DNA of 64,000 nt from Oopsacas minuta (GCA_024704765.1 JAKMXF010000307.1:248001-312000), one strand, 5' to 3'; numbered from the stretch's first letter, positions 8,249-57,639 are shown. The notes: generated by a model from the letters alone, not told the origin. Program-made: numbers and translations.

Positions 8249-9565
8249 ATGGAGAGGATAGAGGAGAGGAGAGGAGAGGAGAGGAGAGGAGAGGAGAGGA
8301 GTGGAGTGAGAAGAGAAAGAGATGTGACGCATTGGTTGTGTGAGCAAAGAGGGGTGTGCAAAGCAAGAGTTCATACCAAAGGGATGGTGATAGTCAAGCG
8401 CACGAATGAGCACTCCCATGGGCCTGACGAGCAGGCAGCGGACTGTTGTGAAGCGAAGGCAGGCATGAAGAGGAAAGCACGGGAGTCCCAGGATAGCACA
8501 CACCACATAGTGGGCGAGAGTTTGCTAACAGCATCAGAGGGTACTGCTGCTAAACTCCCCAAACTGGACAGCCTGAAGCGGACGATACAACGCCAACGTG
8601 CTAGTGTACTTGCAGCTCCAGCACAGCCTACCACTCTAGCAGAGCTAGCTCTACCAGCAGTCTACCAGCAGACAGCCAAGAGAGAACAGTTCTTACTCTA
8701 CTACTCTGGTGCAGACGATGTACACAGATTCCTCATCTTCGGGACACAACACAACCTCGGGATGCTACGGCGAAGCAAGATCTGGCTAGCTGATGGCACC
8801 TTCAAGACGGCGCCTCCCCTCTTCGCCCAGCTGTATGTGGTGCATGGACTTCGTGGAGGAGATGATCCTATGAAGACCGGCCATCTGTTACCGAGCCTGT
8901 TCGTGCTACTGCCCAACAAGACGGAGGCTGCCTACCTGAGGATGTGGGAACAGATCCGCCTACTGTGTCCACTTGCCCAGCCTCAACAGATGCTCCTGGA
9001 CTTTGAGAAGGGCGCGATTACCAGCTTTGAGCATGTCTGGCCTAACACAGTAGTGAAGTGCTGCCTCTTCCACCTCACACAGAATATCTGGCGACATGTG
9101 CAGTCTGTAGGGATGCAGTCTGCCTACACACATGACGAAGAGTTGGCTATGCGCATCCGGAGGATACCAGCCCTTGCTTTTGCTCGACCAGCAGACGTAC
9201 CCGTTCTGTTTGATCAAGTGGCAATGGACCTCCCCCTTACGCCTGGAATAGGCGAACTAGTCGACTACTTTGAGAGGACGTATATCGGCCGCACAGTTGC
9301 CAGCGGATACCATGTAGCGGCGACGTACCCTATTCACCTGTGGAACAACCACATCGGCACGCCCTTAGGACTCCCCCGTACAACCAACGCCGTAGAGGCA
9401 TGGCACCGCAGCTTCAATGCCACTGTCGGCTGCCATCACCCTACCATATGGAAGTTCATCCTCTCACTCAAGCGTGAGCAGAGCCTAGTGGAGGTGCGGC
9501 ATACTAACTACCTCGTTGGCAAGCCACCATGCACCAACCAAGCGGAGGCGGTCCCAACAGAGTGA
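8249..9565 (+). CDS. MULE transposase, left arm of copy 1 (microsatellite-derived N-terminus, frameshifted C-terminus)
   Basis: 438-aa ORF with a partial FLYWCH (WLCEQRGVCKARVHT...HSH) and MULE DDE motifs WLADGTFKTAP, LLDFEKG, CCLFHLTQ and TTNAVEAWH. A 7-bp insertion gives the ending PCTNQAEAVPTE. Confidence 0.75.
   Translation: MERIEERRGEERRGEERSGVRRERDVTHWLCEQRGVCKARVHTKGMVIVKRTNEHSHGPDEQAADCCEAKAGMKRKARESQDSTHHIVGESLLTASEGTAAKLPKLDSLKRTIQRQRASVLAAPAQPTTLAELALPAVYQQTAKREQFLLYYSGADDVHRFLIFGTQHNLGMLRRSKIWLADGTFKTAPPLFAQLYVVHGLRGGDDPMKTGHLLPSLFVLLPNKTEAAYLRMWEQIRLLCPLAQPQQMLLDFEKGAITSFEHVWPNTVVKCCLFHLTQNIWRHVQSVGMQSAYTHDEELAMRIRRIPALAFARPADVPVLFDQVAMDLPLTPGIGELVDYFERTYIGRTVASGYHVAATYPIHLWNNHIGTPLGLPRTTNAVEAWHRSFNATVGCHHPTIWKFILSLKREQSLVEVRHTNYLVGKPPCTNQAEAVPTE
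8261..8300 (+). repeat. (GAGGA)8 microsatellite at the outer boundary of the left arm
   Basis: Read directly. The equivalent tract in copy 2 (~54859-54878) has 4 units. Confidence 0.9.
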
Positions 9566-11082
9566 GGAAGCGTTGAAGACTCTAGTTCGCGAATATTATT
9601 CTCCAGATCGTTCTAAAATGGAGTTCTTGCAGGGTGTAGCACATCATTTCAGCCTGGGAGCCGATTAACATGTAAATCAAAGTATTATCTAGCCCTCAAT
9701 ACATTGATTAGAGATAATCCTTTAGATTAACATGTTAATCGGCTCCCAGGCTGAAATGATGCGCTACACCCTGCAAGAACTCCATTTTAGAACGATCTGG
9801 AGAATAATATTCGCGAACTAGAGTCTTCAACGCTTCCTCACTCTGTTGGGACCGCCTCCGCTTGGTTGGTGCATGGTGGCTTGCCAACGAGGTAGTTAGT
9901 ATGCCGCACCTCCACTAGGCTCTGCTCACGCTTGAGTGAGAGGATGAACTTCCATATGGTAGGGTGATGGCAGCCGACAGTGGCATTGAAGCTGCGGTGC
10001 CATGCCTCTACGGCGTTGGTTGTACGGGGGAGTCCTAAGGGCGTGCCGATGTGGTTGTTCCACAGGTGAATAGGGTACGTCGCCGCTACATGGTATCCGC
10101 TGGCAACTGTGCGGCCGATATACGTCCTCTCAAAGTAGTCGACTAGTTCGCCTATTTCAGGCGTAAGGGGGAGGTCCATTGCCACTTGATCAAACAGAAC
10201 GGGTACGTCTGCTGGTCGAGCAAAAGCAAGGGCTGGTATCCTCCGGATGCGCATAGCCAACTCTTCGTCATGTGTGTAGGCAGACTGCATCCCTACAGAC
10301 TGCACATGTCGCCAGATATTCTGTGTGAGGTGGAAGAGGCAGCACTTCACTACTGTGTTAGGCCAGACATGCTCAAAGCTGGTAATCGCGCCCTTCTCAA
10401 AGTCCAGGAGCATCTGTTGAGGCTGGGCAAGTGGACACAGTAGGCGGATCTGTTCCCACATCCTCAGGTAGGCAGCCTCCGTCTTGTTGGGCAGTAGCAC
10501 GAACAGGCTCGGTAACAGATGGCCGGTCTTCATAGGATCATCTCCTCCACGAAGTCCATGCACCACATACAGCTGGGCGAAGAGGGGAGGCGCCGTCTTG
10601 AAGGTGCCATCAGCTAGCCAGATCTTGCTTCGCGTAGCATCCCGAGGTTGTGTTGTGTCCCGAAGATGAGGAATCTGTGTACATCGTCTGCACCAGAGTA
10701 GTAGAGTAAGAACTGTCCTCCCTTGGCTGTCTCCTGGTAGACTGCTGGTAGAGCTAGCTCTGCTAGAGTGGTAGGCTGTGCTGGAGCTGTAAGTACACTA
10801 GCACGTTGACGTTGTATCGTCCGCTTCAGGCTGTCCAGTTTGGGGAGTTTAGCAGCAGTACCCTCTGATGCTGTTAGCAAACTCTCGCCCACTATGTGGT
10901 GTGTGCTATCCTGGACTCCCGTGCTTTCCTCTTCATGCCTGCCTTCGCTTCACAACAGTCCGCTGCCTGCTCGTCAGGCCCATGGGAGTGCTCATTCGTG
11001 CGCTTGACTATCACCATCCCTTTGGTATGAACTCTTGCTTTGCACACCCCTCTTTGCTCACACAACCAATGCGTCACATCTC
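8319..11082. repeat. Long inverted repeat (arms ~1.37 kb, 21-nt loop at 9691-9711)
   Basis: 8319-9690 is the near-exact reverse complement of 9712-11082, and the ORF track gives the same protein on both strands. Confidence 0.95.
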
Positions 11083-11188
11083 CAACTCTCCTCTGCACTC
11101 CAAATAAATATCCATCCTCCAACAGCTTGTCTCCTCCTCTTTGTGACTTGATCAGCCTAAAGGTTGGCTGATCAAGAGGTTCCGTCAT
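9838..11188 (-). pseudogene. MULE transposase, right arm of copy 1, native ATG but frameshifted
   Basis: Starts MTEPLDQPTFRLIKSQRGGDKL at 11188. Frameshifts near 10913 and 10630, plus the same 7-bp C-terminal insertion. Confidence 0.88.
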
Positions 11189-13092
11189 TGTGAAGTTATA
11201 ATTTCAAAGATATATTGTGATGATTGTAATGATAGAACGAATCTGAGTTAGAACTAGATCATTTTCTATTTATGTCCGAGGATTGCAAATATCACAGGTG
11301 ATCACACCCTGTTTGCTACATTCCTCTTTACCAAATATAGGCCTAAGAGTATTTACTTCGTGTGTGTTTACTTAATACTTACTATAACAATCTTTGGAAT
11401 TCACATCATTAAATGGATTCATGGAATCATGTCATCTAAAATTAGAATTATCTATCCAATTAAGACTTTCCGTGTGTAGATATAATTATTAGAAAATTGA
11501 TTATTAACGTGTACTTAGATTAAATTAATTAACTAATATCATACTAAATTAGGTGCAAATTGTCGGTGGTGCGAATTGTCGGTATCCGGTAGAAAAGTGC
11601 TAATTTTAAATTCTCCATCCCCCCAGAAAAATCACCGATCTACGCCCCTACGTTAGCCTGATGACGTGGCTTACCTGGTTGCGGAATGATGCAAAGATTT
11701 GTAGCAATCATTGGGGTCGTGCCCCATTTGCACAGATAGCAGTGTTTTCCAACCCCTTTTAACGGCCTACCCCTAGCTAATATAGTTCTTTTCTTAAAAA
11801 TAATATAGATGTGTTCAAAAAAATGGTGTACATATATATACGTATAAGAAACTTTTGCATAGGTAGTACTTACGAAATTGCATTAACTATCGAAATTTGG
11901 GAATGGCTATTGTGCAACCCTGAGATAACTTCCAAATTTGATAGTTTTGATTATGGTTTTCCATCCATTTTTATTAATTTGTCAACTTTTGGTTCTTCTC
12001 GTGGATTTTGGGCTCAATTCGTGCACTACATTTCGTGACAATTCAATTCGTTTTACATGTAATTAGTATTCAAATTTCTGACAGTAGTTTAGAAAGGACA
12101 GCACTGTGCGGCCCTACAAGGGCGTATCTAGTAGTTAATCAAGGTGGATATAGGTAGTGAGCGCCCAAATTCGATTAAATACCAACTACGCCCTTAAAGC
12201 GTCGCACAGGAACAGAGATGTTCTTTCCAAACTCCGTAACGAATTCATTGTATTGCATTTATCTCACAGGTCATGAGTATTACCTACAACATATACAAGT
12301 TATATTGATAATGAATCAACAGAAATATGAATTCGTTAACAAATAAGTAAGTGTAAACAATAAGGTCTTAACAAGTTAAAATATTTAGGGGAGAAATTGA
12401 AGTTAGCACTCTTCAACAGCGATTGGTCGAGAAGATAGTTCTTGAAGATGAACTCTCATTAGCTACCAATAAATTGCACATATTATTTGCCAGTTTCTCA
12501 AATTATATGGAATAAAAACACCTTCCGAGCTCGAAATAATAATAGCTCTAAAGAAATATACAGAAGATTCATACGTGTCTGCTAAAGTGGAACTGCAACA
12601 AAAGATAAACGGTAAGATTTTAAATTATATCGTAATTATGAATGTATTGAATACATATATCATAGCAGTTTAACCGAATACGGACGGGAAAATGCGTGAT
12701 TTAATGGCGTCTGCAAGGTGCAAAAATCTCGTATTTGGTGCAGGAATTGGTCAAATAAATGTGGTAAAACTCGTGTTCAGGTAATTACGAACTTAAAATT
12801 TGGCCTAAATCGTTCAGGGCAGGGGTTCCCAACCTAGGGTAAGCCAGGACTATTCCAGGGTGACGCAAGAAGGTTGAATCATTTAAGAAAATTTCTTAAA
12901 ATTTGTAATTTTGATACCATGTATTTGGAAATGATCTAAAATAATATTTTGACAGAAGAATTGCAATAGCAATATTATATTGCCTAGAAAATGAACCTAG
13001 GGGCAATGATTTAATTACTTTTCCATTACACATAATTAAGTATGAATGTCTGTCAAGCAATAGGCCTGCGAAAATGTAAATGAAATTATATA

Positions 13093-14418
13093 CAGGGTGT
13101 TTCACAATTGATGTCCTATTGATAACTAAGATATTTTTAACAAACCAACAATAAAGTTAGATGAATTCTAGTACCCTCGGTAATTGTAATGTTTGACTAA
13201 TTAAAATTCATTCCCAACTTGAAAATAGCAATATTATAGTGACTTTTAGATTTGATCAAAAGGCTACTATCAACTTGCCTCGTAAATTAAGGCAAAAGAG
13301 TATAGTATTTCGGTCTGCAGTTGTGTTGTGTGAATGCTACAAGGTGGATTAACACAAAAAATTATAGCATCGAAATTCTCAATAAAATTAGAACCATTCG
13401 TCGATGGTAGAAATTATTTCAAAGTGGATATTTGCTCGAGAGCCAGACTCCTCGTTGAAGAAAAGCGTCCGTTCCGGCTGCAAATATAATTATATCCAAA
13501 TCAATCGATAAGAGGCGGCAATCTACTCGTAAACTATCGCGTAATCTGAAGTCTCATGATTATTCGATCTCAGTTACTACTGTATATTGTTATCTGACTA
13601 AACCCAGGGGGCGTGAAATCCTCAAACGACAGAGGGAACCTCTATTGACAGAAAAACAGAGAAATTCTCGACTCTACTTTCTGTCAGGAACGGCTAAATT
13701 GGACAGCTAAGGATTGGCGGAAGGTTTTATTTTCAGACGAGTCCCCATTCGAATAATACCAGCCTTCAAATCGTAAAATAATTGCATTTGGGCTCATAAT
13801 GCATCTGATGTTGAGCCAGTAAAAATGGTGAAACAGCCAATAAAAATTCAGGTCTGGGGAATGATGTCACGTCGTGCTGTCTCTGAGCTACATATCATAA
13901 CGTCTGGTCAAACAATAACGTCAGATAATTACATATGCGAGACCCTGGAGAAAACTCTCAAATCAACACTGGCTAGATAGAGAAAAACCGGCTCCGTTTT
14001 ACAACGGAAAATATTAGAAAACATGTCGGAAGGAATTTTCTAACGATGGCGCACCTGCTCTTCATGCCAAAAAGACACAAGAATGGCTGAAAGTCAACAT
14101 CAAATGTTTTGGGAGAAAGGAATATTGCCTGGAAATTCGCCTGATCTGAATCTCATAGAAAATCTCTGGTCTATGGTTCAAAGAGAACTCGATTTAAAAT
14201 GCAGTCAGGAGACCTGAAAACGCTCGAAAAAATCTCAAATCTGCATGGTAATCTGTCTCACCGAAATATTTGAACAACATGATTGATGGAAGGACAGAAC
14301 GTATTAGAAAATGTATCAAACTTAATGGAGGCTATAATGAAAGTAATTGTATTGATATATGAATTTTTTTCAAATTATTAGTCAATATTTGATAGGTCAT
14401 CAATTGTGAAAGACCCTG
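13093..14418 (+). mobile_element. Tc1-like transposon, probably DD37E, degenerate transposase
   Basis: TIRs CAGGGT(G/C)TTTCACAATTGATG(T/A)CCTAT, TA on both flanks, 1326 bp. Motifs KVLFSDES, QVWGMMS, DGAPA and PGNSPDLNLIENLW. D-to-E spacing is 37 after restoring one missing T. Confidence 0.85.
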
Positions 14419-14648
14419 TAACTTTTACCAAAGAATCCTAAATAGTATATTATCACTCAATATATGATGGTTATTCAAGTTTCAATGAGTACTCTTTTGC
14501 AAAACTCTATCATTGACCGTAGAAAGATGGCATCCAGCACAACAAATAATACTTCACCGAAAAAACGTCATCATTCCAACATGTACATGGCTTATGGTTT
14601 CACATCAATAGTGAAAGGTGGCGTAGAATATCCTCAATGCGCCAATAA

Positions 14649-17250
14649 CACTGATATACAAAATTGTAAAGGTTTTTGATGATTAAACAAAAATAGCTGA
14701 AATTGAATCATTTGAAGGGACTGTTTATGAATGAGTTAAGTATGTATTCACAACAGGTCTATAATTTGTAATTTTCTGGTTGGAAGATTGCACCAATATA
14801 CGATTAAATATATGAAATTATACATACATTCAGGTTTATTACCTACTAAATCACACTAATATTAACTATCACTAGCGCGCTAGCTTACTTGCGCTAGCGT
14901 TCTAACACTTCGTGTCCGTACTCGGCCTTCGGCCCTCGCTTTGACTGTTAGTTTGTGTGATATTCAGAATCAGCGTACCCGATTACCCCACAATAACCGT
15001 TGAAACCACATTTCCAGGATTTTGAAATTTGTTTACCTTTTGTTTCCTATATATCCATATAAACAAGTTAAATTGATATATGACAAATCCATAAGTGTGA
15101 TTCGGATCAGCATATTCGCTAACCTTTAGTCAAGTTTCATGAAATTTGTATATTTTTCTGATTAACACCATAGATATATAGATACAAACATTTTTGCAAA
15201 TACGAATTCCACATTCCATTTCAGCTTCCTTAGCAACGGACAAACGGACAGACAACAATTGAGATTTAATAATATAGATTCATATTTAATCGTCAAAAAA
15301 TTGTTTTTTCCTCGGCTTTCTTTTGTGTAGAACATCAGGCTTGTTGTGTTTCAAACACCAACAGTGGTCCGCCATCATACTGGAATTCCATTTTCTTTGG
15401 TATCTGTGTTCAATCTCACTAATATCCTGATGAAAACGTTCGCCTTGTTCTTCGCTTAGTGCCCCAAGATTTTTTGGAAAATAATTCAGGTGTGAGTGAA
15501 GGAAATGGATTTTTATAGACATTCTCGCACCGAGCATTTTGTAATTCTCTATTAATCTCTCGACAATGTCAGCATAGTTGTCAACTTTGTGATTTCCAAG
15601 GAAACTTTCCACCACATCACGAAAGCTCAGCCAAGCTTTCCTCTCTAGGCTATTTAATTTTTTAAGAAATTCATCATCTCTGAATAGCTCCCTTATTTGT
15701 GGTCCAACAAAGATGTCACCTTTAATCTTCACATCAGAAATTGCAGGGAATTTTTTCCACGAGGTACAAAAAACTTCCACAATCCTTGAGCAATGCCTTC
15801 ACAAAATTTTCCATTAAACCAAGTTTAATGTGAAGAAGTGGTGACAAGACATCGTTAGAATCCACAAGTGGTTCTTGAATAACATTGTGACTACCAGAAA
15901 CTAAATGGTCTCGATGCGACCACACTTTCTGGACGTAATGTCGAGCGTCTGCACGGCTATCCCACAAAGACAGAAAACATGGATATTTGGTGTAACCACC
16001 TTGTTGTCCAAGAAGTAATGATATGACCTTAAGATCTCCACAAATTAACCATCGATGCATGGTGTAATTTAGTGCATCTAGGAAGACTTTCATGCTGTCG
16101 TAAGTCTCCTTAATTTGAAAAGAATGTGCAACTGGAATACACGCAAGCTTGTTACCATCATGGAGTAACACTACCTCTAAACTTCTTTTAGAGGAATCAA
16201 TAAATAATCGCCATTCTTCAGAATCATATTTCACTCCAAGCTTTTCTACCAGACCAGGAATATTTCCACAATATACAAATGATGACTGTACGTGAAAATA
16301 TTTAAGGAAATCTTGTTCTCTAGTTCAATATTTTGAAATATTCGCCCCCGGAAGTAGTAAATTCTTCTCTTTTAGACGTGAAGCAAGAATTTCTGAAGAC
16401 GATTTTGGTAAATTGAGATCTCTTATTAGGTCATCAAGATCATCTTGATCAAAAAGCTGAGGAGAATTATCATCTGATGGGAGTATGTACTCATCAGAAT
16501 CTCTACTACTATCATTGTCACTGCTAATGTCCAATATTTCCAATGGAACTGGTACAGGTAGGTCCTCTGAATGTGGAACTGGCCTAATGGCGGACGGTAC
16601 GTCTGGGTACGCAATACTGGATTTATTCTTTTTTGTGATACGATCAATTTTCGTCATGCAGAAATAACAATCCGAAAGATGACACATTGGTTCTCTCCAT
16701 ATCATTGGAACCGCAAACGGCAATTTCTTTCTCCTCCCAGCATACCACAAGCGTAAGTTCTCAACACATGTCTTACAGGCATTGTGTGGAGCCCACGGCT
16801 TATCTTGATCCCCAAGATGGCATCCAAAATATGCGAAACAACAGCGTTCTACAGCCTTTGTGATATTTTTCCGTTGGTCAGTTGTAGTATACCTCCCACG
16901 GATATAACAAAACTTTTCAGAGAATTTTTACAAACCCGAGAAGCCACAAACAATAAAATGAACAAGATAAACTAACTGTCGAGTGGAATAAAACAGATTA
17001 TAACTACTATTAGAGGAAATTTACATTACATAAGCAATTCAAACCAAATAAATGCGATAAGGGTGATGTGTAGAAAGGAATTTAGAAATATTTTGACCAC
17101 GTAGTCAATAAAGACCAACATAGCTAAAATAGAGATTTCTTACTTTTAGTACCCTTGAGAATGAAAAAATACATAATAATTCCCAATATATATCTACACT
17201 TTGTAAAAATAATAGAGAAAGAAGATCATCAAAAATGTTGTATATCAGTG
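14649..17250 (-). mobile_element. Chapaev3-like (CMC) DNA transposon, copy A
   Basis: TIRs CACTGATATACAA, flanks TAA and TTA (3-bp TWA-type target, one mismatch). It splits the Buster codons QC/LKVLS. Confidence 0.8.
15286..16947 (-). pseudogene. Chapaev3-like transposase, several frameshifts
   Basis: Motifs GDQDKPWAPHNACKTC, PFAVPMIWREP..HLSDCYFC, WRLFIDSSKRSL, CFLSLWDSRA, LHIKLGLM and SEEQGERFHQDI. The family name is from recall of the motif set and the CAC...GTG ends. Confidence 0.75.
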
Positions 17251-20915: not shown

Positions 20916-23204
20916 AGATAGATCAACAAAATTTAACTTCATTTTCTCATCAAGTATTAGAATGACATTTTCTAACCTATTTTTCTATGCTGAATTCAAA
21001 TCTACTTTCTGATTCTTTCCAGCACGTCCAGTTTTCTTCCATCTACAAGTCAACGATTTTTAGGTATTTCCTAAATTTTTCCTGTTATTTTATGGTAGTG
21101 GCTGTCTTTTTGCCTTCTTACATGATAGCCATCTGAAATAAATCAAACTTTCGATGTTTTAGATTAATGCCAAGATAATATCAGTTATTATCCTAGCTCT
21201 TACATATAATTATTCACATTCATGCATGTATCAACTACTCAAAAACTAAGGGAAAACACATATCCATCTAGAAGTAAAAGGTAGCTAACTAAATTAAAAG
21301 TGTTGAGAGTATGATTTCTTTGTATATATCTTGTTGGGATTATCTCTGAAGAGCCTCCACCAGTAATCGGACATCATGCCCTCATTCCAGAAACCTTGGT
21401 ATCGGGTTTCCATCTCCTGTATGTCTTGGTGGAATCTCTCACCTTGTTCATCACTTACAGCACCAAGGTTCTCAGGGAAAAATCAAGATAAGAGTGCAAG
21501 AAGTGAAGTTTTAGCGACATGAGAAAGCCCAACTTCTCGTATACGTTGAGCAAGGTTTCCAATCCTTCTCTGTAGTTGGACGACTTCTTGTTGCCCAAAA
21601 AGTTCTCACAAACCCATTTGAAAGAATTCCAAGCACTCATTTCTAATTCGGATAATGTCTTCTCGAAATCTGGATTCCTGAATACTTGTCTGGTTTGTGG
21701 TCCTACAAATACTCCCCCTTCTAACTTTGCCTCGCTTAATTTCGGGAATTTGCCTACCCAAGGCAGAAATCCTGCTGAATTTGTGTTACCCATTGTTTTA
21801 ACGAATGTTTTCATTAATCCAAGTTTAATATGACGTGGGGGTAAGAAAACTTTGTTTGGATCTACCAATGGCGAATGCTGTAAATTGGTTTTCCCACTTC
21901 ATAGGTTCTCTTCGGCCAATCACATTTTTTATAATGTTTACCAGTTGCTCGGCTGTCCCATAGATATAGGAAACAACAATACTTTATAAAACCAAGTTGC
22001 AAGCCCATCAATAGCCCGATTATCTTAAGATCATCGCAGATATTCCATATATGTGTTCTATACTGTATTGCCTCCAAAACTTCCTGCAAATTAACGAAGG
22101 TTTCTTTCAGATAGACGGAGTGAGCAATTGGAACGCCAGGCTTTAGATTTCCGTTATGCAACAGAACAGCTTTCAAACTGCGTTTTGACGAGTCGATGAA
22201 AAGGCGCCAATCAGAGGAAGAATGTTCTTGTAATAGGTTTGCATTGAGTCCTTCGATATCATTACAATAGCACAGTGGACCATCAGTGGTGTAGTATTGT
22301 GTGAGATCGAAATTTCGCTTGCGATAGTGGGATACTAGGACATCTTTGTCGAGTAGGTTTTTCTGTTTGAGCCTGGATGCAAGGAGTTCAGCTTTGTCTT
22401 TAGATAAGTCTAGATCCCTGACCAGGTCATTCAATTCTCCCTGTGTAAATGTTTGTGGCTCTAGTAATTCATCTTCCGGGACATTATTAGCATCTGTAGA
22501 ATCTGCATGAACATCTTCCACCATATCACACCAGATTTTAATTTGCTGTGGCTTGGGAGTTGGGATTGGTAATGAGATGTCGTGTGGAATTGGCCTGCGA
22601 GCAGGATCCAAATCTGGGTAAACAAGAGCGTGCTTATTCTTGGCTGAGAATCCTGTAATATCGATAAGGCAAAAGTAACAATCATTAAGGTGATTTTTCT
22701 GTTCCCTCCAGGCCATGGGTATTGCAAATGGCATTGAAACTTTCCTTTTATTCAACCAATCACGTAGTCCACTTGAACAAGAAGTGCATATAACATGTGG
22801 TGTCCACGACTTATCTTGGTCACCATGTGGACATTCGAAGTACAATTTGTATATGTTCTTTAATTGATTTGTGATTGGTTATCTTGGTGATTTTACGCAA
22901 AAAAGATCACAAACGTAACAGAAATTGTCGAGATGAGTTCTACAATTACGATGCATGTTTGTAATTTGATTTGCTTGAATTCAAATAAGCAAAGTCATTT
23001 ATATTCCAGATAATTGAATCAAAATAGGCATGCTCATATAGCAATTTAGTAACTAGGTAATACTATACTATTGAAAAAATGGATATTGGATTTCAGAATA
23101 ACTAGACGTGCTAGAGAAATTCTGATTGCAAATTCGAGTTCAGCATTCAAAAGTATGCTAAGATAAATGTATGTGATCTCTGATGAGAAATCTTGTTGAG
23201 TTGT
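20916..23204 (-). mobile_element. Chapaev3-like transposon, copy B (transposase pseudogene 21294-22956)
   Basis: N-terminus MHRNCRTHLDNFCYVC, then GDQDKSWTPHVICTSC, WRLFIDSSKRSL, HIKLGLMK and SDEQGERFHQDI. Degenerate TCAACAA ends. Near-identical to copy C. Confidence 0.8.
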
Positions 23205-39234: not shown

Positions 39235-39293
39235 CACTGCCTGGCCAAAAGTATTGGAACACTGTTTACAACTTGTGCATAAGTGGCATCACG
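39235..39293. mobile_element. Right 59 bp of the same MITE, inverted
   Basis: Its reverse complement (CGTGATGCCACTTATGCACAAG...CCAATACTTTTGGCCAGGCAGTG) continues the MITE exactly where 37440 stops. The pieces total 248 bp. Confidence 0.8.
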
Positions 39294-40132: not shown

Positions 40133-42904
40133 CAGGGCCGTAGCCAGAGCGTAGTGTTAGGAGGGGCTAAGTAAACTTTAGGGGGGCTTGGTTACTTAAG
40201 ATTTTTATATTAAATTTGGGGAGGCCAATGAACTAATGACTACAATTCTATATTAATCTCATAAATTTATATAATATCTAAAATAAACGGAGTCTTCTGT
40301 CCTTCTTCCTAGAAAATTTCAAGAGGAACTTTCAACTTCCATTTTTTCATATATCTAGATTCAAACGCAAAAAACACTAAATTGGAACATCTGATTTCCG
40401 ACATATTTCTCTGTGGCCTACTAAATCTAGTGAGAACTGAGAACGAAGACTCACACATAGAAGTGCTACAACCAAACGTTGCTACAGTAGCAAACAAATT
40501 ATATGTGTTATTAAACGGCTGTCGATACTTGTACAATTCTTCGAGTATATTCGTTTTATCTTTCATGAATTCCTTTACTACTGACAATTCTTCAATTGAG
40601 GGAAGCGAAATTCCAAGCTCTGATAAAGGGTACAACTTATCAATGTCAAATTCTTCGATCGAATCAACTGCTTGTAATAACATGTTATTCTCGAAAAATC
40701 TCCTCTCGAATTCACGGCATGTTATATGAATTGTGTCTATGAATAATGATTCTAACCTATCATGTTCTTTTGTTGTAGATTCGGTAAGAATCCAATAGTT
40801 ATATAAACAGCTAGGTTTTTTGCGCCTAATTGGACGAGATATATCACTTCATCATGCAGTAGTATACTTTTGGCCTCGCTAACTCTCCCACTAAATGCAT
40901 CTGGATTTTGAAGCTTATTAATGTTTTTAAATACAGAATTGATAATTTCCATGGCGTTTTTTAAGCCTGCATCACGGGATTGTAAGATCTTATCTGCTGG
41001 TTCTATTGTAAGTAGGAGCTTTTTCATAAATATCAAACAAAAATGGAACTCTAACTTAATTAGTGTGGCCAACAAACCAGTACTCTGTACAACTTGCTCT
41101 CCACTAAATTCTGTGGAGCATTGGACTGTTCTAAGCAATTCAATTATAGTTTGATAGTTAGAATAAATAGCCTCAGTGATTTTCAAATGTCCTGACCATC
41201 TTTGTTCTAAAAGACGATCAATACGAGTTCCTGTATAAATTGATATAACTTTGACATGATTCAGAAATAAGTGTAACATTCTACATTGGTCAAAAAATAT
41301 CTTGAGTTCTGGAACTTCAGATATTAATTTCATAATTACCAAATGAAGTCGATGGTTGAAACAATGAACATACGGAACCTTTCGATGTAATTCCTCTTGA
41401 ATGAGGGTTTGAACACCTCTTTTTCTACCACTCATTACACTAGCGCCATCATAGCACTGTGAAAGTAATCGTTTAGAATCCAATCCATTATTTCTCAAGA
41501 TCTCCAATGTTAAATTAGCCATGGTTTTGGCATCTGAAGAGAGAGTTGTTGCTACATTAACTAAAGATTCAAAAACTTTACCTTTCCTAACATAGCGAAT
41601 TCCAATTGATACGTGTTCTATATTGTTACGATCTCTAGTGCCATCTTCTAGTAAAGTAAACCACGGGACATCAGCATCTAAAATTTCAAAAATAATTTCT
41701 TCCCTAACTACTTCCGACATATTATCTATCACATCATTTTGAATATCTGGAGAAAGGTAATGAGCATTTTTAGGAATTTGTGTATAAATTTCAGCGAGTT
41801 TCGGGTTCTTTGTAAGTGTATATTCAAACAAGTTCCTGAATAATCCATGCTCCGTATTTTCATCAATATCATAATTTCCACGCAGAGCTAATTCATTGAC
41901 AGCTAAAAATAGAACAATTTCAGCAATGGACCGTATGTAATATCTATTTTTTTCAAAAGCATTAGCACAAACTAATGTGGATATTTCTAGTTGGGATGAT
42001 TCGCGAAGATCTTTTTCACGCCAATTCGCCATTGCAGTAAGATGAACACGAGAATCAGCATGTTTACAAAGTCCTTTGCTTTTTTCTATTGCCGATTTCC
42101 AATTTTTAAATTCAATGTTTGTGAAGAAATTTTCTTTAGTCCCGTGTGAGAGAAATTGACGGCAGGGATGGCAAAATACAGCATCAAGGGATGGTGAATA
42201 TTCCAACCAGGGAAATCTAATAAACCAATCTTGTTGAAAACTACGGCCAATAGAATCCTTCGGATAAATCAATCCTTTAATTTGTATAATGTTTCTTCAT
42301 AGGGTAGATATATCTGGTATTTCTTTGTTGATCGGATTATATAATTCAATACTATTCAAGGGATCAGAAAGAGAGCTATCAAAGGAAATAAAATTATCCA
42401 TACTAATATAATCACTAACTAAATTGAATAGAAAATCAAAATAATTAGCAATTTGACAGAACTAAAATCAAAAGGAGAAAGAACAGGAACAAAATTATTT
42501 GCATTATAAGAAAATATCAAAGGAGGATTCTTGATCATTTTAAAAAATCAAGAGACTACGTATTTCTATGTATGGTAATTATAGCCATGAGGAATGATTT
42601 CACAATTCGCACATCAAATGTAATAAACTGGAAGGAATATATGTTGTGGTCATGTAAAAACAAAAATATAATTTCAATGGTCGCTGTAAGAGCATCCAAT
42701 GAGTTAAGTATATTAACTAGCAATAGGAATTAGATAACTAGAATGTATAGTCAATTTGACATAATCACAAACATTTCCTTGATTTAACTATTATTCAAGA
42801 TCTAAGATAGTAAAGATCAATATAGCCTAGCAAAATTTACAGGGTGGTTAAATTTGGTAGGGGGGGGGCTCAGCCCTCCCTAGCCCTCCCTAGCTACGGC
42901 ACTG
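40133..42904 (-). mobile_element. hAT Tip100/ZMYM1-type transposon, full length
   Basis: TIRs CAG(G/T)GCCGTAGC(C/T)AG. Flanks TTGGGGCA and TAGGGACA (8-bp TSD, 6/8 match). 2772 bp. Confidence 0.9.
40309..42272 (-). pseudogene. hAT transposase (TTF-type Zn finger, DUF4371-like region, dimerisation domain), frameshifted near 40780
   Basis: Motifs WFIRFPWLEYSPSLDAVFCHPCRQF, LLEDGTRD, SQCYDGASVMSG, HCFNHRLHLV, EQRW and TSMCESSFSVL. Confidence 0.88.
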
Positions 42905-47358: not shown

Positions 47359-47410
47359 CAATATATATCCTGGCCATACATCGATTCTAAACATCCATAA
47401 GAAAATAGAC

Positions 47411-48120: not shown

Positions 48121-48125
48121 TATAT

Positions 48126-49412: not shown

Positions 49413-50037
49413 CAGGGTGCTCAAACTTTTAAATCTTCGGGCCACTTTAAAATTAGGCTCCGACCCACGACCACCAATCATAGATCGCTATGACATTAGT
49501 TTAATCAATTTCCAAGCTATACTATTTGACCTCATATTCCATTAACAATGGATTCTACTTATAAATTCAGGTTATTGACTTAAATATAATCTTGCAAATG
49601 GATTCGAATAATTTGATGTCTCTTTTTGAACGCAACTTGTTGCTAGCAAGTGGATAAAAGTACTAAAACCAGATTCGGGATATACTATGTACTGTTCGTA
49701 GTAGAATAACATTGAAGAAAACCTACCTACACTAAGAAATTTATTTAATGGGAGTGATGATATTGCTTGGATTAAACTAATAAATCAATATCCTACGACC
49801 TACGTTATACTTGTGAAACTCGAATAATTGATAGAATTGGTAAATGCAAACAATAGTTACCAAATACTGTATTCATACTAGGAACATTGATGCATATGTA
49901 GAGTATCTATAATAATTTCAATATTATGTTTAGAAAAACAATTATTATGTGACTTTCGAAGTACATCAATCTACTGTGATATATATGAACAATGAAACCA
50001 AGAAAATTTCCGCGGTGTCACCGTTTGACCAGCCTTG
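49413..50037. mobile_element. Buster-type hAT MITE
   Basis: Imperfect TIRs CAGGGTGCTCAAAC / GTTTGACCAGCCTTG, perfect 8-bp TSD ACATAGAG. Confidence 0.85.
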
Positions 50038-52012
50038 ACATAGAGTGTATATGCTTCTTGTTTTTGGTAGCTCATTTACAATAATCTCTAAGGCTCGAAC
50101 ACATTCATAGAATTTTTGAAAAGTTGACAAATTGGATGGAATCTTATCACAATAAGGACAAAAGTAAAATAAAATCAATCAATCAAGTAGCCAATCAAAT
50201 ATTTCTATCGAATTTGGAAATGAATTCCATAGAATACAAATAAATTGTCATTACATTTTTGGAGAAAAGTATCCTGAGGACATCAGGGATAAATTCTACT
50301 CTTAATTCAGTTCAACAAAGATTCACATCGTCTGGCATTAATCAATATATTCGTGAATACATAGGAATTTCATAATGATAGATAAATTGAAAATTTATGA
50401 CTAGTCATAATTATTCGCATTCTTTCGTTTTAGTTGTTGATTCGCAACGTCCTCATTATATTAAGAATAGTTCGACTGTTCTTAAGGCAGATGTCAGATA
50501 TTAAAGTTGCTATTAATGAAAGTCTCGAATTCATCTAAGTAACTTTATCGAATTCGTCATAAAAAATTGTGTGAGTTCAATTATGCTTGGAGAATTAGGG
50601 CCTTGAATGGTTACCATGTTGCAGAGATCCGATGGATTCCTATAAAGCACAAAGTGCTTAGCTTTCTTGCCCTGTGGGCTCACGAACACTCCGGATCCTC
50701 TTGTATTCTTGTTGTTAAAAGTTCAATAGAAAATAGGAGGACAACTTGACAAGCATAAATTTATTTCCTCTTCAACTGTTTGCAGTCTTTCAATTTTTAT
50801 ATTCAGAATATTTTTGAGTGCGAAGAAGCCGAGTTCACAAAATAATTAGTCCAAAAATGCTGTAGATTTTAAGAGCCTAAGTTATTATCAGAGGGCAATG
50901 TGTTTTAACATATATTTAGAATATATCAAGGTCTATTTCTTTATACATTAATTTCAAGATGTGATCATTCCTAATATCATCCAACTCTTCTTCCTCCTCG
51001 ATATCTAATAGAAGATCGTTTAATCCACCCCGAATAATGGATTTCTCACCCAGTCATAATCTTCATTAGGCAAATTTGGAATGCAACGCTGAATTTTATC
51101 TTGTAATGTGTTAAGGTATTCAGTGATATGCGAAATAATCCATATGCATTGCTCAAAGCGGGATGAAGAAAAATATCTAAATTCACTTTTGTAACTCGGA
51201 TTTTATAGAAGTATTTTTTCATTCAGATACTACATCTTATGTGTAGAAATGCGGATAGAAGTGGAAATACAACATATCTGTAGCATTAGCTAACTTTGCA
51301 CACCAAGTTGTATCAGCAAATAAATTCACAAAACTTCTTTGATATCTTCAATAGTGAAAAACTTAACCAGATATTTTTTCAGTTCATAGATGCGAGACAA
51401 TCTTTTACTCTCGATAGTAATTTGACCTCTCTGCGGCTTGACATGTTGATATCCCATTTCTTCACAAAGCGTAGTAAATTAAGTAAGATTTCGGCGGCAT
51501 TTGATCAAATTCACGTTTTACAAAGTCGTCAAGTGCAGCTTTTGTTGAAATCCCATCATCTAATGCTTCGCGGTGAAAAAGTAGTGTATGGTTACGATCT
51601 CCTTGTTTGCTGTTTTGTCAAAGTTACAAATCTCTTCATTGACCCAAACATTGTTGGAGCAATCTGTACAATGGAATACCGACAATTCGCACCTAATTTG
51701 ATTGGTCAATTAATTCCGAATATGATTTTTAGCATTGTATGATCAATTTTTGTTGTTATTTATGTATATAAAGTAAAGAAATTTCCAAAAGTTCGTATAC
51801 TTCTAATGGCTACAGAGGTAATTGAGTGTTCGAATAGCATATCGTGAATATTCGACTTAGAGAGTGACTTTCAAAGCATACATAAGATACTTAGTAATAC
51901 ATAACACAAATTATCAGTTGATTAGGAGTAACCTAGGCGCCCGAAAGGTGCCTATTGAGGACGCTTCGTGTCCGCAACCGCGTACCGCAAGGAAGAGTAG
52001 CTTACTTGTATA

Positions 52013-54026
52013 CTGTATTTCCCTGAATAAGCGCCCCGGCGCTTATTTTTTCGTGCACATGAAACTCCAGGCCCTTATTTTGAGGAAGATGATAGAAATT
52101 AGTTTTCCCTAATTAAATAGGTAGTATCTAAAAATACATTGATGAAGTTAGTACTATATAAAAGCTACGTAACTATGCAGTGCATTTATAAGGATCATCC
52201 TGGACCTCCTCACACAAATTTTCGTCATCTAGGATAACAATTTGATTTAGTTCATCTTGTTCAAAGTCTAGTTCGTGCGGGTTTTCAGACTTGTCATCCA
52301 TACCGTTGTTTATGGTCAGTTCTTCTAATTTCTGAACTAGCTCATCACGCTTGTTGAAAAGTATCCTATTCTCTTTAATAACTGTGATCTTATCATTTTC
52401 GGAATTGTCAATACTATTTGAAATTGCGCACGACTTGAAAGATTCTGTAATGATTTCTGTGGATAAGGGTTCCCAGGCTTTTTTGACCCACGAGGCTACT
52501 AAAAGTTTAGTAGGAGCTTTCATGTTACCACCACGTGTGTACTCTTTCTCACCTTCACTCATCCACTGCTCATACTGCTCACGATAAGCAGCTTTAAAGG
52601 ACTTATTCCAGGACACATCAGGCGCTTGGATCAGACCGGTGCATCCTCCAGGAATAACTGCATGTCAGTTTTCAGCCTTGCAACCTCTTTTTTGACACTA
52701 TCTTGGATATGACATCTAAAACTGTTCCAAACAAGTAGTCTCCGCCCGAATGATAATCCTCCCCATACAGTTTGTAACCATTCATGGGTCAACTTTTCAT
52801 CCATCCATCCATTACTACTCATAACACAAACAACACCACTGAGTTCATTAAGATCACGATCACGTCTTTTACCTTTGAAAACAATAAATGGGGGTAGTTT
52901 AATGCCATTTGCTTTAGCAGCGAGACACACAGTAATGCGGGACTTTTCGTGGCCGGTTGTCCTAATTGGGATAGATTTCTGTCCCACGAAATCGACAGTT
53001 GTATCGACAGGCATGTCAAACCATATTGGAGTCTCATCCATGGCTCCGATATGGGAAAGCTGGTATCGATTACGTAGAATTTGCGAGCGTACGAAGATGA
53101 TGTAATTCATCAACTTTGGAATGACTGTTTCAGGAATCTTTTGTCCAACTGTAGTACGACGCCTGAGAGTAATATTGTGTCTACCAAAAAAGTTCCGTAG
53201 CCAACCGCGACTTGCTACGAAGGATTCTTCTTCTCCAGCATAGAGTTCTAGAGCCTTTCCCTGTACCATTTTACGTGTAACTCTCAGCCTCTGGCTTCTC
53301 AGTTCCTCAATCCATGAATACAAACTTTCCTCCAACGTCTCGAATGAAGGCGGCCGACCACCGCCATCTAGCCTACGACGCTTTGCATTATGAGCAGCTT
53401 CACAACTATCTTTTAGCTTGTCTTTATTTTTGCACCATTCTCGGATACGCTTGCAGTCGACACCATACTTTCGAGCTGCTTCTTCCTTTGAATTTCCAGA
53501 AGTTACAAAACAAACAGCTTCTAATTTAAATTCAAGTGTGTAGCTATGAAACTTTCGTTTTATTTGTCCTTTTTCCATATTTACTATTGCTAATATGAAA
53601 GGGAAGACAATATTATGTAGCTAATAATGGCTAGTACCGGTACACAAATTACTATTTGTACAATTTGAAAAATCTAACATATAAACTCAACACAATACAA
53701 TTTGTAATCCAACATCTATTAATCGAGCTTTATACTAATCAGAATGTTTTTCACATCACGTAATCAGTTCACACTAACACGTTTATTACGCCTACTTTCA
53801 GTTTTTTAATCGATAGAATCATAATGTAAACATTATTCATTCATTCAAACTTGTGATATACCATATACATATACCTTTACTGATCAATGAATTTCAATCC
53901 CTAGCGTTTATTTAAACGGGCACTTATAATAGACCGGCGCTTATTCTTTTCGTTCATATGAAACCCTCGGCGCTTATTCAAACCGACGCTTATTCAAACT
54001 CCCGGCGCTTATTCGGGGAAATACGG
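52013..54026 (-). mobile_element. pogo-superfamily transposon (DD35D, Passer/POGK-like)
   Basis: TIRs C(T/C)GTATTTCCC(T/C)GAATAAGCGCC with TA duplication. The empty site is visible in MULE copy 1 near 7430-7436. Confidence 0.93.
52173..53578 (-). pseudogene. pogo transposase (Brk-type DBD, CENP-B HTH, DDE_1) with a 1-nt frameshift near 52660 and second D changed to N
   Basis: Motifs SYTLEFKLEAV, FVASRGWLRNF, GAMDETPIWFD, LLVWNSFRCH and (AVIPGGCTGLIQ)APDVSWNK, with 35 residues between N and the last D. Confidence 0.88.
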
Positions 54027-54905
54027 TATGTTGAATTTTTGAACTATACAAGTAGTAAAGTATAGATTGCACAATCTGTGATCAAAGAATTATCCATACA
54101 TTTGGGAAAATATAAATAAAATCATTCCGGATTTATTATAATACAATTTGAAGCTGTTCTTCTATGGAAAATCTTTCTTATATTTCCCCACATTGAGCTG
54201 GGCTAACTCAAAATTGCTACTTAAATTCCTTTAATAATACGGTAGACTCCGCTTAATAGAGCCACCGGTTAATCTGGCCAACACCTTTATCCAGTAAATA
54301 TAGGTGATAATTTAATAACTGGATGGGTACTGTTTCGGTTAAGTAAACTAGCCATCCACTTTTAAATATTGGCCTTGCTGAGATAGAACGGAATGATATC
54401 TGTAACAGATATTTTGTTCATTTAACTTATAATCATGATATCACTTAGGTCATGATTAAATGAACTTCATACCCCTACACAATTATCCTACAAAATGGGG
54501 ACATGAGAATACTTGCCAGTAGGATATCCAATTCAAGCATTAAGTGTTACGTAAAGTTTGAACCACCCCGTTCGTGCCAGGAAATTAACCCTTTAGGTTT
54601 CTATTCGATAACAAGTCAGATGAATCAAGTCAAGTCATAAATAAACTATATTTAATGTCTAATATGCATGTGTCAACAAACTAATTGAATAAAAATAATG
54701 ATAAATATAATAAAAATAAGAGAATAAACAATTATGATAAATTAAAATACATATATATAAGAGAATAGTGTTGTAGGAGAAAGATCAAGAGAGGTGCAGC
54801 TACCGCATCATAACCATTGTTCTTCTTCCATGGTAGCTGCACCTCAATGGAGAGGATAGAGGAGAGGAGAGGAGAGGAGTGGAGTGAGAAGAGGAGATAT
54901 GGCGG

Positions 54906-56235
54906 ATTGGTTGTGTGAGCAAAGAGGGGTCTGCAAAGCTAGAGTTCATACCAAAGGGATGGTGGTAGTCAAGCGCACGAATGAGCACTCCCATGGGCCT
55001 GACGAGCAGGCAGCAGACTGTTATGAAGCGAAGGCAGGCATGAAGAGAAAAGCACGGAGTCCCAGGATAGCACACACCACATAGTGGGCGAGAGTTTGCA
55101 AACAGCATCAGAGGGTACTGCTGCTAAACTCCCCAAACTGGACAGCCTGAAGCGGACGATACAACGCCAATGTGCTAGTGTACTTGCAGCTCCAGCACAG
55201 CCTACCACTCTAGCAGAGCTAGCTCTACCAGCAGCCTACCAGCAGACAGCCAAGGGAGAACAGTTCTTACTCTACGACTCTGGTGCAGACGATGTACACA
55301 GATTCCTCATCTTTGCGACACAACACAACCTCGGGATGCTGCAGCGAAGCAAGATCTGGCTTGCTGATGGCACCTTCAAGACGGCACCTCCCCTCTTCGC
55401 CCAAGTGTATGTGGTGCATGGACTCCGTGGAGGAGATGATCCTATGAAGACCGGTCATCTGTTACCGAGCCTGTTCGTGCTACTGCCCAACAAGACGGAG
55501 GCTGCCTACCTGAGGATGTGGGAACAGATCCGCCTACTGTGTTCACTTGCCCAGCCTCAACAGATGCTCCTGGACTTTGAGAAGGGCGCGATTACCAGCT
55601 TTGAGCATGTCTGGCCTAACACAGTAGTGAAGTGCTGCTTCTTCCACCTCACACAGAATATCTGGCGCCATGTGCAGTCTGTAGGGCTGCAGTCTGCCTA
55701 CACACATGACGAAGAGTTGGCTATGCGCATCCGGAGGATACCAGCCCTTGCTTTTGCCCGACCAGCAGACGTACCCGATCTGTTTGATCAAGTGGCAATG
55801 GACCTCCCCCTTACGCCTGAGATAGGCGAACTAGTCGACTACTTTGAGAGGACGTATATCGGCCGCACAGTTACCAGCGGATACCATGTAGCGGCGACGT
55901 ACCCTATTCACCTGTGGAACAACCACATCAGCACGCCCTTAGGACTCCCCCGTACAACCAACGCCGTAGAGGCATGGCACCGCAGCTTCAATGCCACTGT
56001 CGGCTGCCATCACCCTACCATATGGAAGTTCATCCTCTCCCTCAAGCGTGAGCAGGGCCTAGTGGAGGTGCGGCATACTAACTACCTCGTTGGCAAGCCA
56101 CTAACCAAGCGGAGGTGGTCCCAACAGAGTGAGGAAGCGTTGAAGACTCTAGTTCGTGAATATTATTCTCCAGATCGTTCTAAAATGGAGTTCTTGCAGG
56201 GTGTAGCACATCATTTCAGTCTGGGAGCCGATTAA
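54906..56235 (+). pseudogene. MULE transposase, left arm of copy 2: no native start, frameshift near 55060, but intact C-terminus
   Basis: ORF 55084-56235 ends GKPLTKRRWSQQSEEALKTLVREYYSPDRSKMEFLQGVAHHFSLGAD and lacks the 7-bp insertion. Confidence 0.85.
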
Positions 56236-57639
56236 CATGTTAATCTAAAGGATTATCTCTAATCAATGTATTGAGGGCTAGATAATACTTCGATTAACAT
56301 ATTAATCGGCTCCCGGACTGAAATGATGTGCTACACCCTGCAAGAACTCCATTTTAGAACGATCTGGAGAATAATATTCACGAACTAGAGTCTTCAACGC
56401 TTCCTCACTCTGTTGGGACCACCTCCGCTTGGTTGGTGCATGGTGGCTTGCCAACGAGGTAGTTAGTATGCCGCACCTCCACTAGGCCCTGCTCACGCTT
56501 GAGGGAGAGGATGAACTTCCATATGGTAGGGTGATGGTAGCCGACAGTGGCATTGAAGCTGCGGTGCCATGCCTCTACGGCGTTGGTTGTACGGGGGAGT
56601 CCTAAGGGCGTGCTGATGTGGTTGTTCCACAGGTGAATAGGGTACGTCGCCGCTACATGGTATCCGCTGGTAACTGTGCGGCCGATATACGTCCTCTCAA
56701 AGTAGTCGACTAGTTCGCCTATCTCAGGCGTAAGGGGGAGGTCCATTGCCACTTGATCAAACAGATCGGGTACGTCTGCTGGTCGGGCAAAAGCAAGGGC
56801 TGGTATCCTCCGGATGCGCATAGCCAACTCTTCGTCATGTGTGTAGGCAGACTGCAGCCCTACAGACTGCACATGGCGCCAGATATTCTGTGTGAGGTGG
56901 AAGAAGCAGCACTTCACTACTGTGTTAGGCCAGACATGCTCAAAGCTGGTAATCGCGCCCTTCTCAAAGTCCAGGAGCATCTGTTGAGGCTGGGCAAGTG
57001 AACACAGTAGGCGGATCTGTTCCCACATCCTCAGGTAGGCAGCCTCCGTCTTGTTGGGCAGTAGCACGAACAGGCTCGGTAACAGATGACCGGTCTTCAT
57101 AGGATCATCTCCTCCACGGAGTCCATGCACCACATACACTTGGGCGAAGAGGGGAGGTGCCGTCTTGAAGGTGCCATCAGCAAGCCAGATCTTGCTTCGC
57201 TGCAGCATCCCGAGGTTGTGTTGTGTCGCAAAGATGAGGAATCTGTGTACATCGTCTGCACCAGAGTCGTAGAGTAAGAACTGTTCTCCCTTGGCTGTCT
57301 GCTGGTAGGCTGCTGGTAGAGCTAGCTCTGCTAGAGTGGTAGGCTGTGCTGGAGCTGCAAGTATACTAGCACATTGGCGTTGTATCGTCCGCTTCAGGCT
57401 GTCCAGTTTGGGGAGTTTAGCAGCAGTACCCTCTGATGCTGTTTGCAAACTCTCGCCCACTATGTGGTGTGTGCTATCCTGGGACTCCCGTGCTTTCCTC
57501 TTCATGCCTGCCTTCGCTTCATAACAGTCTGCTGCCTGCTCGTCAGGCCCATGGGAGTGCTCATTCGTGCGCTTGACTACCACCATCCCTTTGGTATGAA
57601 CTCTAGCTTTGCAGACCCCTCTTTGCTCACACAACCAAT
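54906..57639. repeat. Long inverted repeat (arms ~1.35 kb, 21-nt loop at 56259-56279)
   Basis: 54906-56258 is the near-exact reverse complement of 56280-57639. Confidence 0.95.

Follow-up and report, generated by a model that had tools for sequence, protein, structure and literature searches.

Evidence for arm-to-arm gene conversion within palindromic Mutator-like transposons of Oopsacas minuta

The stretch of DNA analysed here, called the window throughout, is a 64,000-nucleotide piece of the Oopsacas minuta genome (assembly GCA_024704765.1, JAKMXF010000307.1:248001-312000). Self-comparison gave two regions repeated in direct orientation, 7108-11588 and 51680-58170, the second of which is split by about 2 kb of extra DNA. 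Each of them holds a near-perfect palindrome with a G+C content of about 50%, against about 34% in the surrounding DNA. The two regions are separate insertions of one Phantom-type Mutator-like transposon, in which a 5'-truncated copy of the transposase gene is joined tail-to-tail with a complete gene. An earlier note, made from a reading of this DNA alone, had claimed that variants in the palindrome arms sort by element and never by arm side, and had proposed repeated gene conversion between the arms or hairpin-templated repair.

Two insertions of a transposon with an internal palindrome

Copy 1 (7087-11587, 4.5 kb) was delimited by reading its terminal inverted repeats (TIRs) and target site duplication (TSD) directly and by full-length alignment with copy 2. 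The left TIR (7087-7141, plus strand), which starts with GAATACCGACAATTCGCACC and has 15-bp sub-repeats inside, is answered by the right TIR at 11533-11587 on the minus strand, and the 9-bp TSD, GTAGAAAAG, lies at 7077-7085 and 11589-11597. Copy 2 (51674-58169) is the same transposon, interrupted by a nested pogo-like element, with the 9-bp TSD CTGTACAAT at 51664-51672 and 58171-58179. In both copies the TIRs are about 55 bp long, open with G(A)ATACCGACAATTCGCACC and are built with 15-bp sub-repeats. Since each copy has its own TIR ends and the two 9-bp TSDs differ, the insertions were separate, and the earlier description of a 4.5-kb transposon is correct. A third copy (c3, at locus L003) has a TSD of its own, CCTTTTCCA, while none was recognisable for c4 (locus L002). 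A segmental duplication of about 46 kb was also considered, given the shared flanks and the block found downstream of each copy (20920-22767 and 62153-64000). It was ruled out by the TIRs and separate TSDs, and it is also contradicted by the DNA that lies between the repeated blocks, in which there is no homology.

The open reading frames (ORFs) of three arms match the MULE domain (PF10551) at E = 1.3e-9 to 1.9e-9, and the complete arm of copy 2 matches the FLYWCH finger (PF04500) at E = 4.7e-10, a match that is only partial for the truncated arm. Across 14 homologues the columns D, D, E and C-x2-H do not vary, and these are putative catalytic residues. A FLYWCH finger together with a MULE domain, composite terminal repeats and a 9-bp (8-10 bp) TSD are the marks of the Phantom subclass (PMC3169594). 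The 450-amino-acid product of 56405-57757 (minus strand) is on record exactly for O. minuta under JAKMXF010000307.1, and its nearest relatives are O. minuta proteins annotated as MULE transposase domain-containing.

The palindrome is internal to the element, about 2.7-2.8 kb long with arms of 1.36 kb, and is separated from the left end by 1.2 kb and from the right end by 0.5 kb. In copy 1 the truncated arm (T1; 8319-9679, plus strand) is without the native first 37 or so codons and carries the MULE domain and a partial FLYWCH finger. It is followed by a 45-nt loop (9680-9724), itself a degenerate palindrome with halves A and B, and then by the complete arm (C1; 9725-11188, minus strand), made up of a palindromic part (9725-11083) and the native 5' end with its ATG (11084-11188). 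The corresponding parts of copy 2 are T2 (54893-56245, plus strand), a loop at 56246-56290 and C2 (56291-57757, minus strand; palindromic part 56291-57652). The complete gene thus has its native ATG on the minus strand, at 11188 (copy 1) and 57757 (copy 2), and the truncated arm starts within the FLYWCH finger at about codon 37, where it adjoins a GA-rich microsatellite. This outer junction is the same in copies 1 and 2, as had been claimed for them: in the alignment of the flanks, alignability ends at the same column beside the microsatellite. The loop had also been described as shared. Its 45-nt sequence is indeed identical, but the loop of copy 2 is the exact reverse complement of the loop of copy 1.

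At the loop, each arm ends in a 16-bp self-complementary sequence, GATTAACATGTTAATC (9664-9679, 9725-9740, 56230-56245 and 56291-56306), which overlaps the ancestral stop codon and has 1-nt variants in some arms. As it is self-complementary, the loop is bordered by a direct and an inverted repeat at once.

The arms differ in the state of their reading frames. The T1 ORF (8249-9565, 438 amino acids) is uninterrupted and takes its ATG from the flanking GA microsatellite, so that 8249-8318 adds a new N-terminus (MERIEERRGEERRGEER...) to the T1 transposase; in the complete arm beside it the frame is broken, two 1-bp frameshifts splitting the C1 gene into ORFs 10892-11188, 10614-10892 and 9838-10566. 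In copy 2, T2 has a 1-bp deletion near 55055 and an ORF (55084-56235) that runs through the conserved C-terminus, while C2 has the uninterrupted 450-amino-acid FLYWCH and MULE ORF (56405-57757), which stops early owing to a 7-bp insertion at 56439-56445.

This frameshifting insertion is also found at 9525-9531 in T1 (plus strand) and at 9872-9878 in C1. T2 is without it, the corresponding position lying between 56101 and 56102, so that the earlier claim of a shared 7-bp insertion holds for three of the four arms and fails for the left arm of copy 2. Homologues ranging from sponges to ticks and tunicates keep the C-terminus that is read when the insertion is absent, which makes it a derived frameshift, at a cost of about 45 conserved residues, and rules it out as the ancestral state.

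The nested element of copy 2 is a pogo/Tigger-like DNA transposon (52004-54026, minus strand; HTH_Tnp_Tc5, CENP-B_N and DDE_1 domains), which has inverted ends and was inserted at a TA in the left flank, outside the palindrome. Its inverted ends are about 23 bp long and read C[T/C]GTATTTCCC[T/C]GAATAAGCGCC, and its transposase is broken into two ORFs, 52631-53578 and 52173-52616. Given this nested insertion, copy 2 is not very young.

Arm pairing, edges and centres across the family

The four arms of copies 1 and 2 (left and right; L1, R1, L2 and R2) were aligned with MAFFT. Inside the arms this alignment has 32 sites at which the elements differ and the arms of each agree (L1 = R1, different from L2 = R2), no site at which left agrees with left and right with right, no site with the crosswise pattern (L1 = R2, different from R1 = L2), and 17 private substitutions confined to a single arm. 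Beyond column 100 or so lie the flanks, where the grouping is by side, and the point of change is identical in the two copies. All 17 of the coding differences listed in the earlier note (16 amino-acid pairs and GAGGCGG/GAGGTGG) are present in the ORF translations and in the alignment, and its statement that no site within the arms groups by side stands at 32:0:0. Between 14 and 15 of the shared differences are synonymous, and therefore selection on the protein cannot yield the by-element pattern.

Further copies were reached via annotated proteins, so that the census is incomplete. Eleven O. minuta loci were fetched, of which one (L001) is the copy 2 region of the window and ten are new. The tail-to-tail palindrome is present in seven of these ten: L003 (c3), L002 (c4), L009 (c7) and L010 (c8), together with L007 (c5), which has a deletion in one arm, L011, which has a central deletion, and L008, in which the second arm is truncated. 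The palindromic structure is thus found at nine loci on eight contigs, as both window copies lie on one contig. L004 and L012 are one-arm fragments. We considered L004 as a possible ancestral single-gene form, but this fragment (f6) nests within the palindromic clade (support 97/94) and is therefore a broken palindromic copy. Two relatives differ in architecture. L006:5681-7699 (ENA ERZ25072740) is a compact, non-palindromic element of 2.0 kb with 196-bp terminal repeats flanking one 482-amino-acid gene; this is the ordinary single-gene architecture, and the protein identity is 65%. L005:5930-7353 (ENA ERZ25072730) has the terminal motif of the window copies upstream of a 450-amino-acid gene, without an inverted repeat.

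The c4 and c8 subfamilies have different terminal sub-repeats (CGACATTTCGTTCCA and CGACAAAATGTTCCA) and are diverged from the window copies by 12-13%; c4 has an intact 480-amino-acid gene. Different junctions across the copies were looked for, and the junction was the same wherever it is preserved and was examined. The outer junction, GGTAGCTGCAC...(GGAGAG)n beside GGAGATGTGAC, is the same in copies 1 and 2, c4, c5, c7 and c8, while in c3 it was lost to a deletion, and the same centre with the A and B loop halves is found in all seven elements whose centre is intact. Given the common junction and centre, the palindrome arose once, before the deepest split sampled.

In maximum-likelihood (ML) trees of the arm interiors, the arms of six elements pair by element with support of 100/98-100, or are identical. 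For copies 1, 2 and 3 (c3) the pairing has a support of 100/99, and approximately unbiased (AU) tests, with p from 3e-47 to 3e-120, reject the groupings T1 with T2, T1 with C2, and T1+T2+T3. No clade of left arms was found, and the trees thus bear out the pairing proposed earlier. For 14 of the 15 pairs that can be made from the six elements there are no by-side sites and 29-177 by-element sites. The same can be seen from the divergences. Arms within an element are 99.3-100% identical, with a divergence of 0.59% in copy 1 and 0.74% in copy 2, while arms of copies 1 and 2 differ from each other by about 3.0%. The synonymous divergence between the two copies (5.1-5.5%) equals that of their left flanks (5.5%; right flanks 8.5%), against only 0.6-0.75% from arm to arm within an element. 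In the arm interiors 8 columns differ in copy 1 and 12 in copy 2 (5 substitutions and the 7-bp indel), compared to 0-2 in c3, c4, c7 and c8.

The pair of c4 and c8 shows where this homogeneity ends. By-side sites number 26 between them and by-element sites 20, and the two kinds are not interleaved: by-side sites are limited to the outer 50 or so and the inner 60 or so alignment columns of the arms, and by-element sites to the 1.1-kb arm interior. In the tree of the edges the truncated arms are joined at 100/100 and by-element pairing is rejected (p = 0.0004). The arms of c4 agree throughout the interior (about 1,136 columns, or 1,127 once columns are filtered) and differ in 46 edge columns, and those of c8 differ in 1 interior column and 51 edge columns. 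The edges are 20-30% diverged between sides, and this divergence is common to both elements; the inner edge of the truncated arm is a decayed form of the conserved C-terminal coding sequence. By-side edges are the edge effect expected of tract-limited conversion that needs homology on both sides.

The end points of the tracts vary among elements. In c7 both arms now bear the decayed inner segment, as a result of copying, whereas the window copies and c3 have the canonical inner segment on both arms. The interior of c7 resembles that of copies 1-3, and its inner edge that of c4 and c8. Additionally, at L009 (c7) the palindrome boundary has moved outward by about 25 bp (6895-6930 and 9655-9690), and the sequence GGAGTGGAGTGAGAAGAGAAAGAG from the flank of the truncated arm is now on the complete arm too, where it replaces part of the FLYWCH coding region.

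The centre behaves differently from the arms. Halves A and B remain recognisable in all elements, and therefore the centre was never homogenised. Half A adjoins the truncated arm in copy 1, c4, c5 and c8, and the complete arm in copy 2, c3 and c7, so that the loop is flipped in three of the seven elements. With both orientations seen, at least one inversion of the centre has occurred, and a flip relative to the flanks requires a crossover between the arms. All the orientations could be accounted for by a single flip, placed on the branch (itself weakly supported) that leads to copy 2, c3 and c7. Inversion is known to come about by recombination between inverted repeats within one element (insertion sequences, PMC3004938; Y palindrome, PMC3723533).

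The ratio of nonsynonymous to synonymous divergence (dN/dS) is 0.22 between subfamilies, at a synonymous divergence (dS) of 0.35, and 0.40-0.45 among copies 1, 2 and c3 (p = 0.017 against neutrality in a crude binomial test). As these ratios lie below 1, the palindromic lineage diversified with its transposase under purifying selection. From the ratio of about 0.4 between copies 1 and 2 it further follows that they had diverged for the most part before the two insertions took place. In the window copies this sign of selection coexists with the 7-bp frameshift. They are the most decayed in the sample, C1 having two frameshifts and T2 one, besides the 7-bp frameshift and the nested transposon of copy 2.

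The window holds other repeats as well. A second repeat family (20920-22767 and 62153-64000, up to the window end) is 96.4% identical over 1.85 kb and lies downstream of both copies of the Mutator-like transposon, in the same orientation and at unequal distances; no Pfam match was obtained for its ORFs (21862-22845 and 63096-63968, minus strand). Transposase remnants at 1911-2810, 40752-42272 and 59796-62121 are Tc1/mariner-like (DDE_3, HTH_32), hAT-like (DUF4371) and of a second hAT-like kind (Dimer_Tnp_hAT). The window is thus rich in transposons, and DNA transposons are reported to make up 15% of the O. minuta genome (PMC10280926). Two weak pairs of inverted repeats (27627-27777/30251-30402 and 47405-47624/47899-48125; 75-78% identity, 150-230 bp) are unrelated to the Mutator-like transposon and may be the ends of other old transposons.

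How the palindrome arose and stayed uniform

These patterns are best explained, with a probability of about 0.8, by tract-limited gene conversion from arm to arm, together with at least one crossover, acting on a palindrome of single origin that is older than the deepest split (dS 0.35). The earlier proposal of gene conversion between arms inside a transposon is thus supported by the by-element trees, the common junction, the by-side edges and the loop flips. We infer both the recombination mechanism and the fold-back origin described below from the sequences compared here. The exchange could have taken place in the resting chromosome or during the gap repair that follows excision.

The starting point would have been an intron-less Mutator-like element of about 2 kb, with inverted repeats around one FLYWCH and MULE gene. 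One internal fold-back duplication could have copied the gene backwards, from about 45 bp past the stop codon to about codon 37, and rejoined the element at a GA-rich microhomology. The near-centre symmetry and the microhomology at the outer junction suggest such a single fold-back (snap-back) copying error. Its product would be the 4.5-kb element, which reads terminal repeat, 1.2-kb flank, truncated gene, loop, complete gene on the opposite strand, 0.5-kb flank and terminal repeat. The palindromic element would then have stayed mobile and split into subfamilies. Homologous recombination between its own arms would repeatedly copy stretches from one arm to the other, so that a mutation is either lost or comes to be in both arms, and occasional crossovers between the arms would flip the centre. 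As the tracts would need homology on both sides, the extreme arm ends and the loop could escape and retain old side-specific differences.

A different timing of the exchange has to be weighed as a variant of this explanation. Homogenisation could be tied to transposition itself, if the gap left by excision is refilled by synthesis-dependent strand annealing (SDSA) and the nascent strand snaps back as a hairpin, whose arms are evened out by mismatch repair or by template switching. Every copying event would then reset the arms, as happens to long terminal repeats (LTRs), with divergence setting in afterwards. With dN/dS at about 0.4, copies 1 and 2 diverged mostly while their lineages were active, ahead of insertion, as this timing would have it. 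It is likewise consistent with the 0-2 interior differences in the young-looking copies c4 (with its intact 480-amino-acid gene), c7, c8 and c3, compared to 8 and 12 in the decayed window copies, and a heteroduplex in which a 7-nt loop escaped mismatch repair while nearby mismatches were corrected would fit the insertion found on one arm of copy 2. However, a reset of whole arms is excluded by the side-specific edges kept across the split of c4 and c8, the differences in copies 1 and 2 cluster towards the edges and are not uniform, which suggests later partial tracts, and inverting the loop needs a crossover and not hairpin repair. We treat homogenisation coupled to transposition as possible but less likely than not.

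Fold-back derivatives of DNA transposons are a common outcome of abortive gap repair. It could be supposed that each copy acquired its palindrome recently and on its own, for instance through repeated fold-back at a hotspot, and that the arms are alike through youth, which would agree with their 99.3-100% identity within elements. Against this, the junction is the same wherever it is preserved, and the same centre with its diverged A and B halves is present in seven elements, across subfamilies with differing sub-repeats; a junction that is the same even at 12-13% divergence excludes independent formation. The arm edges, 20-30% diverged between sides in a manner common to c4 and c8, point the same way, and the mosaic of interior and edge in these two elements excludes recent independent formation and the wholesale regeneration of arms. 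We regard recurrent formation as extremely improbable. An artefact of assembly is very unlikely, whether from chimeric palindromic long reads or from short-read polishing that copied variants between arms. It is true that the assembly was made from error-corrected PacBio reads with Pilon polishing. The structure is nevertheless found at nine loci on eight contigs, between TIRs and TSDs where the ends are readable (copies 1, 2 and c3), and the arms are not perfectly identical but have arm-specific indels. The element-specific variants found in two arms must be real in at least one of them, and the sharp mosaic of interior and edge is unlike the result of polishing. There is next to no chance that the arms are alike through purifying selection on both proteins without any exchange. 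Although dN/dS is below 1 and one arm in each window copy retains a long ORF, the same 14-15 synonymous changes occur in both arms of an element, the truncated arm is without the native start and part of the FLYWCH finger, and frameshifts are tolerated in single arms.

Arm-to-arm conversion remains our preferred explanation, but several observations weigh against it. Copy 2 has the 7-bp insertion on one arm, yet variants 14 and 43 bp away from it are common to both arms. This needs a special cause, such as an unrepaired loop, a reversion by slippage or an ectopic exchange. The decayed copies 1 and 2 have 8-10 arm differences in addition to frameshifts, and in-situ conversion is therefore not fast relative to mutation; homogenisation may have taken place largely in transposing ancestors and not at these loci. 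We also looked for GC-biased conversion, and no bias towards GC of the fixed changes was detectable. Polarised changes in the arms are 26 from G/C to A/T (strong to weak) and 15 in the reverse direction, and those in the flanks 52 and 40; the per-site bias towards AT is weaker in the arms, with small counts and with coding constraint as a confounder, and the polarised changes give no clear signal. Finally, all of these results rest on one assembly, of one individual or pool, made from PacBio reads that were corrected with Illumina data and polished with Pilon.

The palindrome could also be seen as an adaptation of the transposon, in which the truncated arm would be a spare template in cis from which mutations in the transposase are repaired or purged by conversion, in line with proposals for Y-chromosome genes. 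If true, this role would explain why the palindromic lineage persisted through a dS of 0.35 under purifying selection, and why the palindrome is the only form of its clade among 12 O. minuta copies (the 11 fetched loci and copy 1). We consider it a rather unlikely reading. A hairpin RNA made by read-through could possibly render the family self-limiting.

Comparison with known systems

The mechanism of arm-to-arm conversion is already known and what is new is its setting inside a mobile element. Our literature search gave no match for an internally palindromic DNA transposon that bears a transposase, and the O. minuta genome paper makes no mention of MULEs. Arm-to-arm conversion has so far been studied mostly in a handful of giant, single-locus palindromes of sex chromosomes. 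A small palindrome dispersed in a 61-Mb genome makes each copy an independent replicate, with its own tract ends, loop orientation, decay and age. The reach of conversion towards the edges, the resistance of indels to it and the frequency of crossovers can then be measured from such copies by comparing their sequences. In this family, moreover, cut-and-paste transposition and continued selection prove compatible with a transposase gene in the form of a 2.7-kb inverted repeat. The finding has a bearing on the origin of transposons with long inverted repeats and on the recognition of such structures by their hosts, to which hairpin RNA could be one route.

The closest parallel for the exchange is found in the sex-chromosome palindromes (P1-P8 of the human Y, and those of the primate and mouse X), in which inverted arms likewise surround a short unique spacer (PMC3723533, PMC8600007, PMC8327919). 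There, as here, arm identity far exceeds the divergence between copies, genes in the arms are under purifying selection, and the spacer is not converted and is inverted only rarely, by crossover between the arms. The differences lie in scale and setting. Arms of 10 kb to 1.5 Mb on the sex chromosomes compare with 1.36 kb here, where the palindrome sits inside a mobile element with many dispersed paralogous copies and one of its arms is a truncated gene. Arm divergence is also higher here (0-0.75%) than on the Y chromosome, and no GC bias is detectable.

Among transposons, Tm1 has a Phantom-type FLYWCH and MULE transposase, composite repeats and 9-bp duplications (PMC3169594), and the Oopsacas element resembles it in its FLYWCH and MULE gene, its 9-bp TSDs and its terminal repeats made of sub-repeats. 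In Galileo the inverted repeats within a single copy are 98-100% identical to each other, and recombination and conversion between the repeats were proposed (PMC3573991). Unlike these and other Foldback or long-TIR transposons (Galileo, FB, Tm1), however, the element described here has its long inverted repeat inside, apart from separate TIRs of about 55 bp, and this repeat consists of transposase coding sequence instead of non-coding arrays of binding sites.

Mu killer of maize is likewise a natural inverted duplication of a Mutator-superfamily transposase gene, with the potential to give a long hairpin RNA if read through (PMC3440606). It includes a terminal repeat and the 5' part of mudrA of MuDR, is driven from a flanking gene and is an immobile silencer (PMC3440606). 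In the Oopsacas element the duplication is tail-to-tail and without the 5' end, and both terminal repeats and the TSDs are intact. Unlike Mu killer it is mobile, with at least three independent insertions, and has diversified (dS 0.35) under purifying selection. As for the inversion of its centre, a likeness can be found in the insertion sequence (IS) elements of Wolbachia and in the flip-flop of the plastid inverted repeat, where recombination between inverted repeats also inverts the middle (insertion sequences, PMC3004938), just as the 45-nt centre is found here in both orientations. The inverted segment is in our case only the loop and the inner arm, and no site-specific recombinase is implied.

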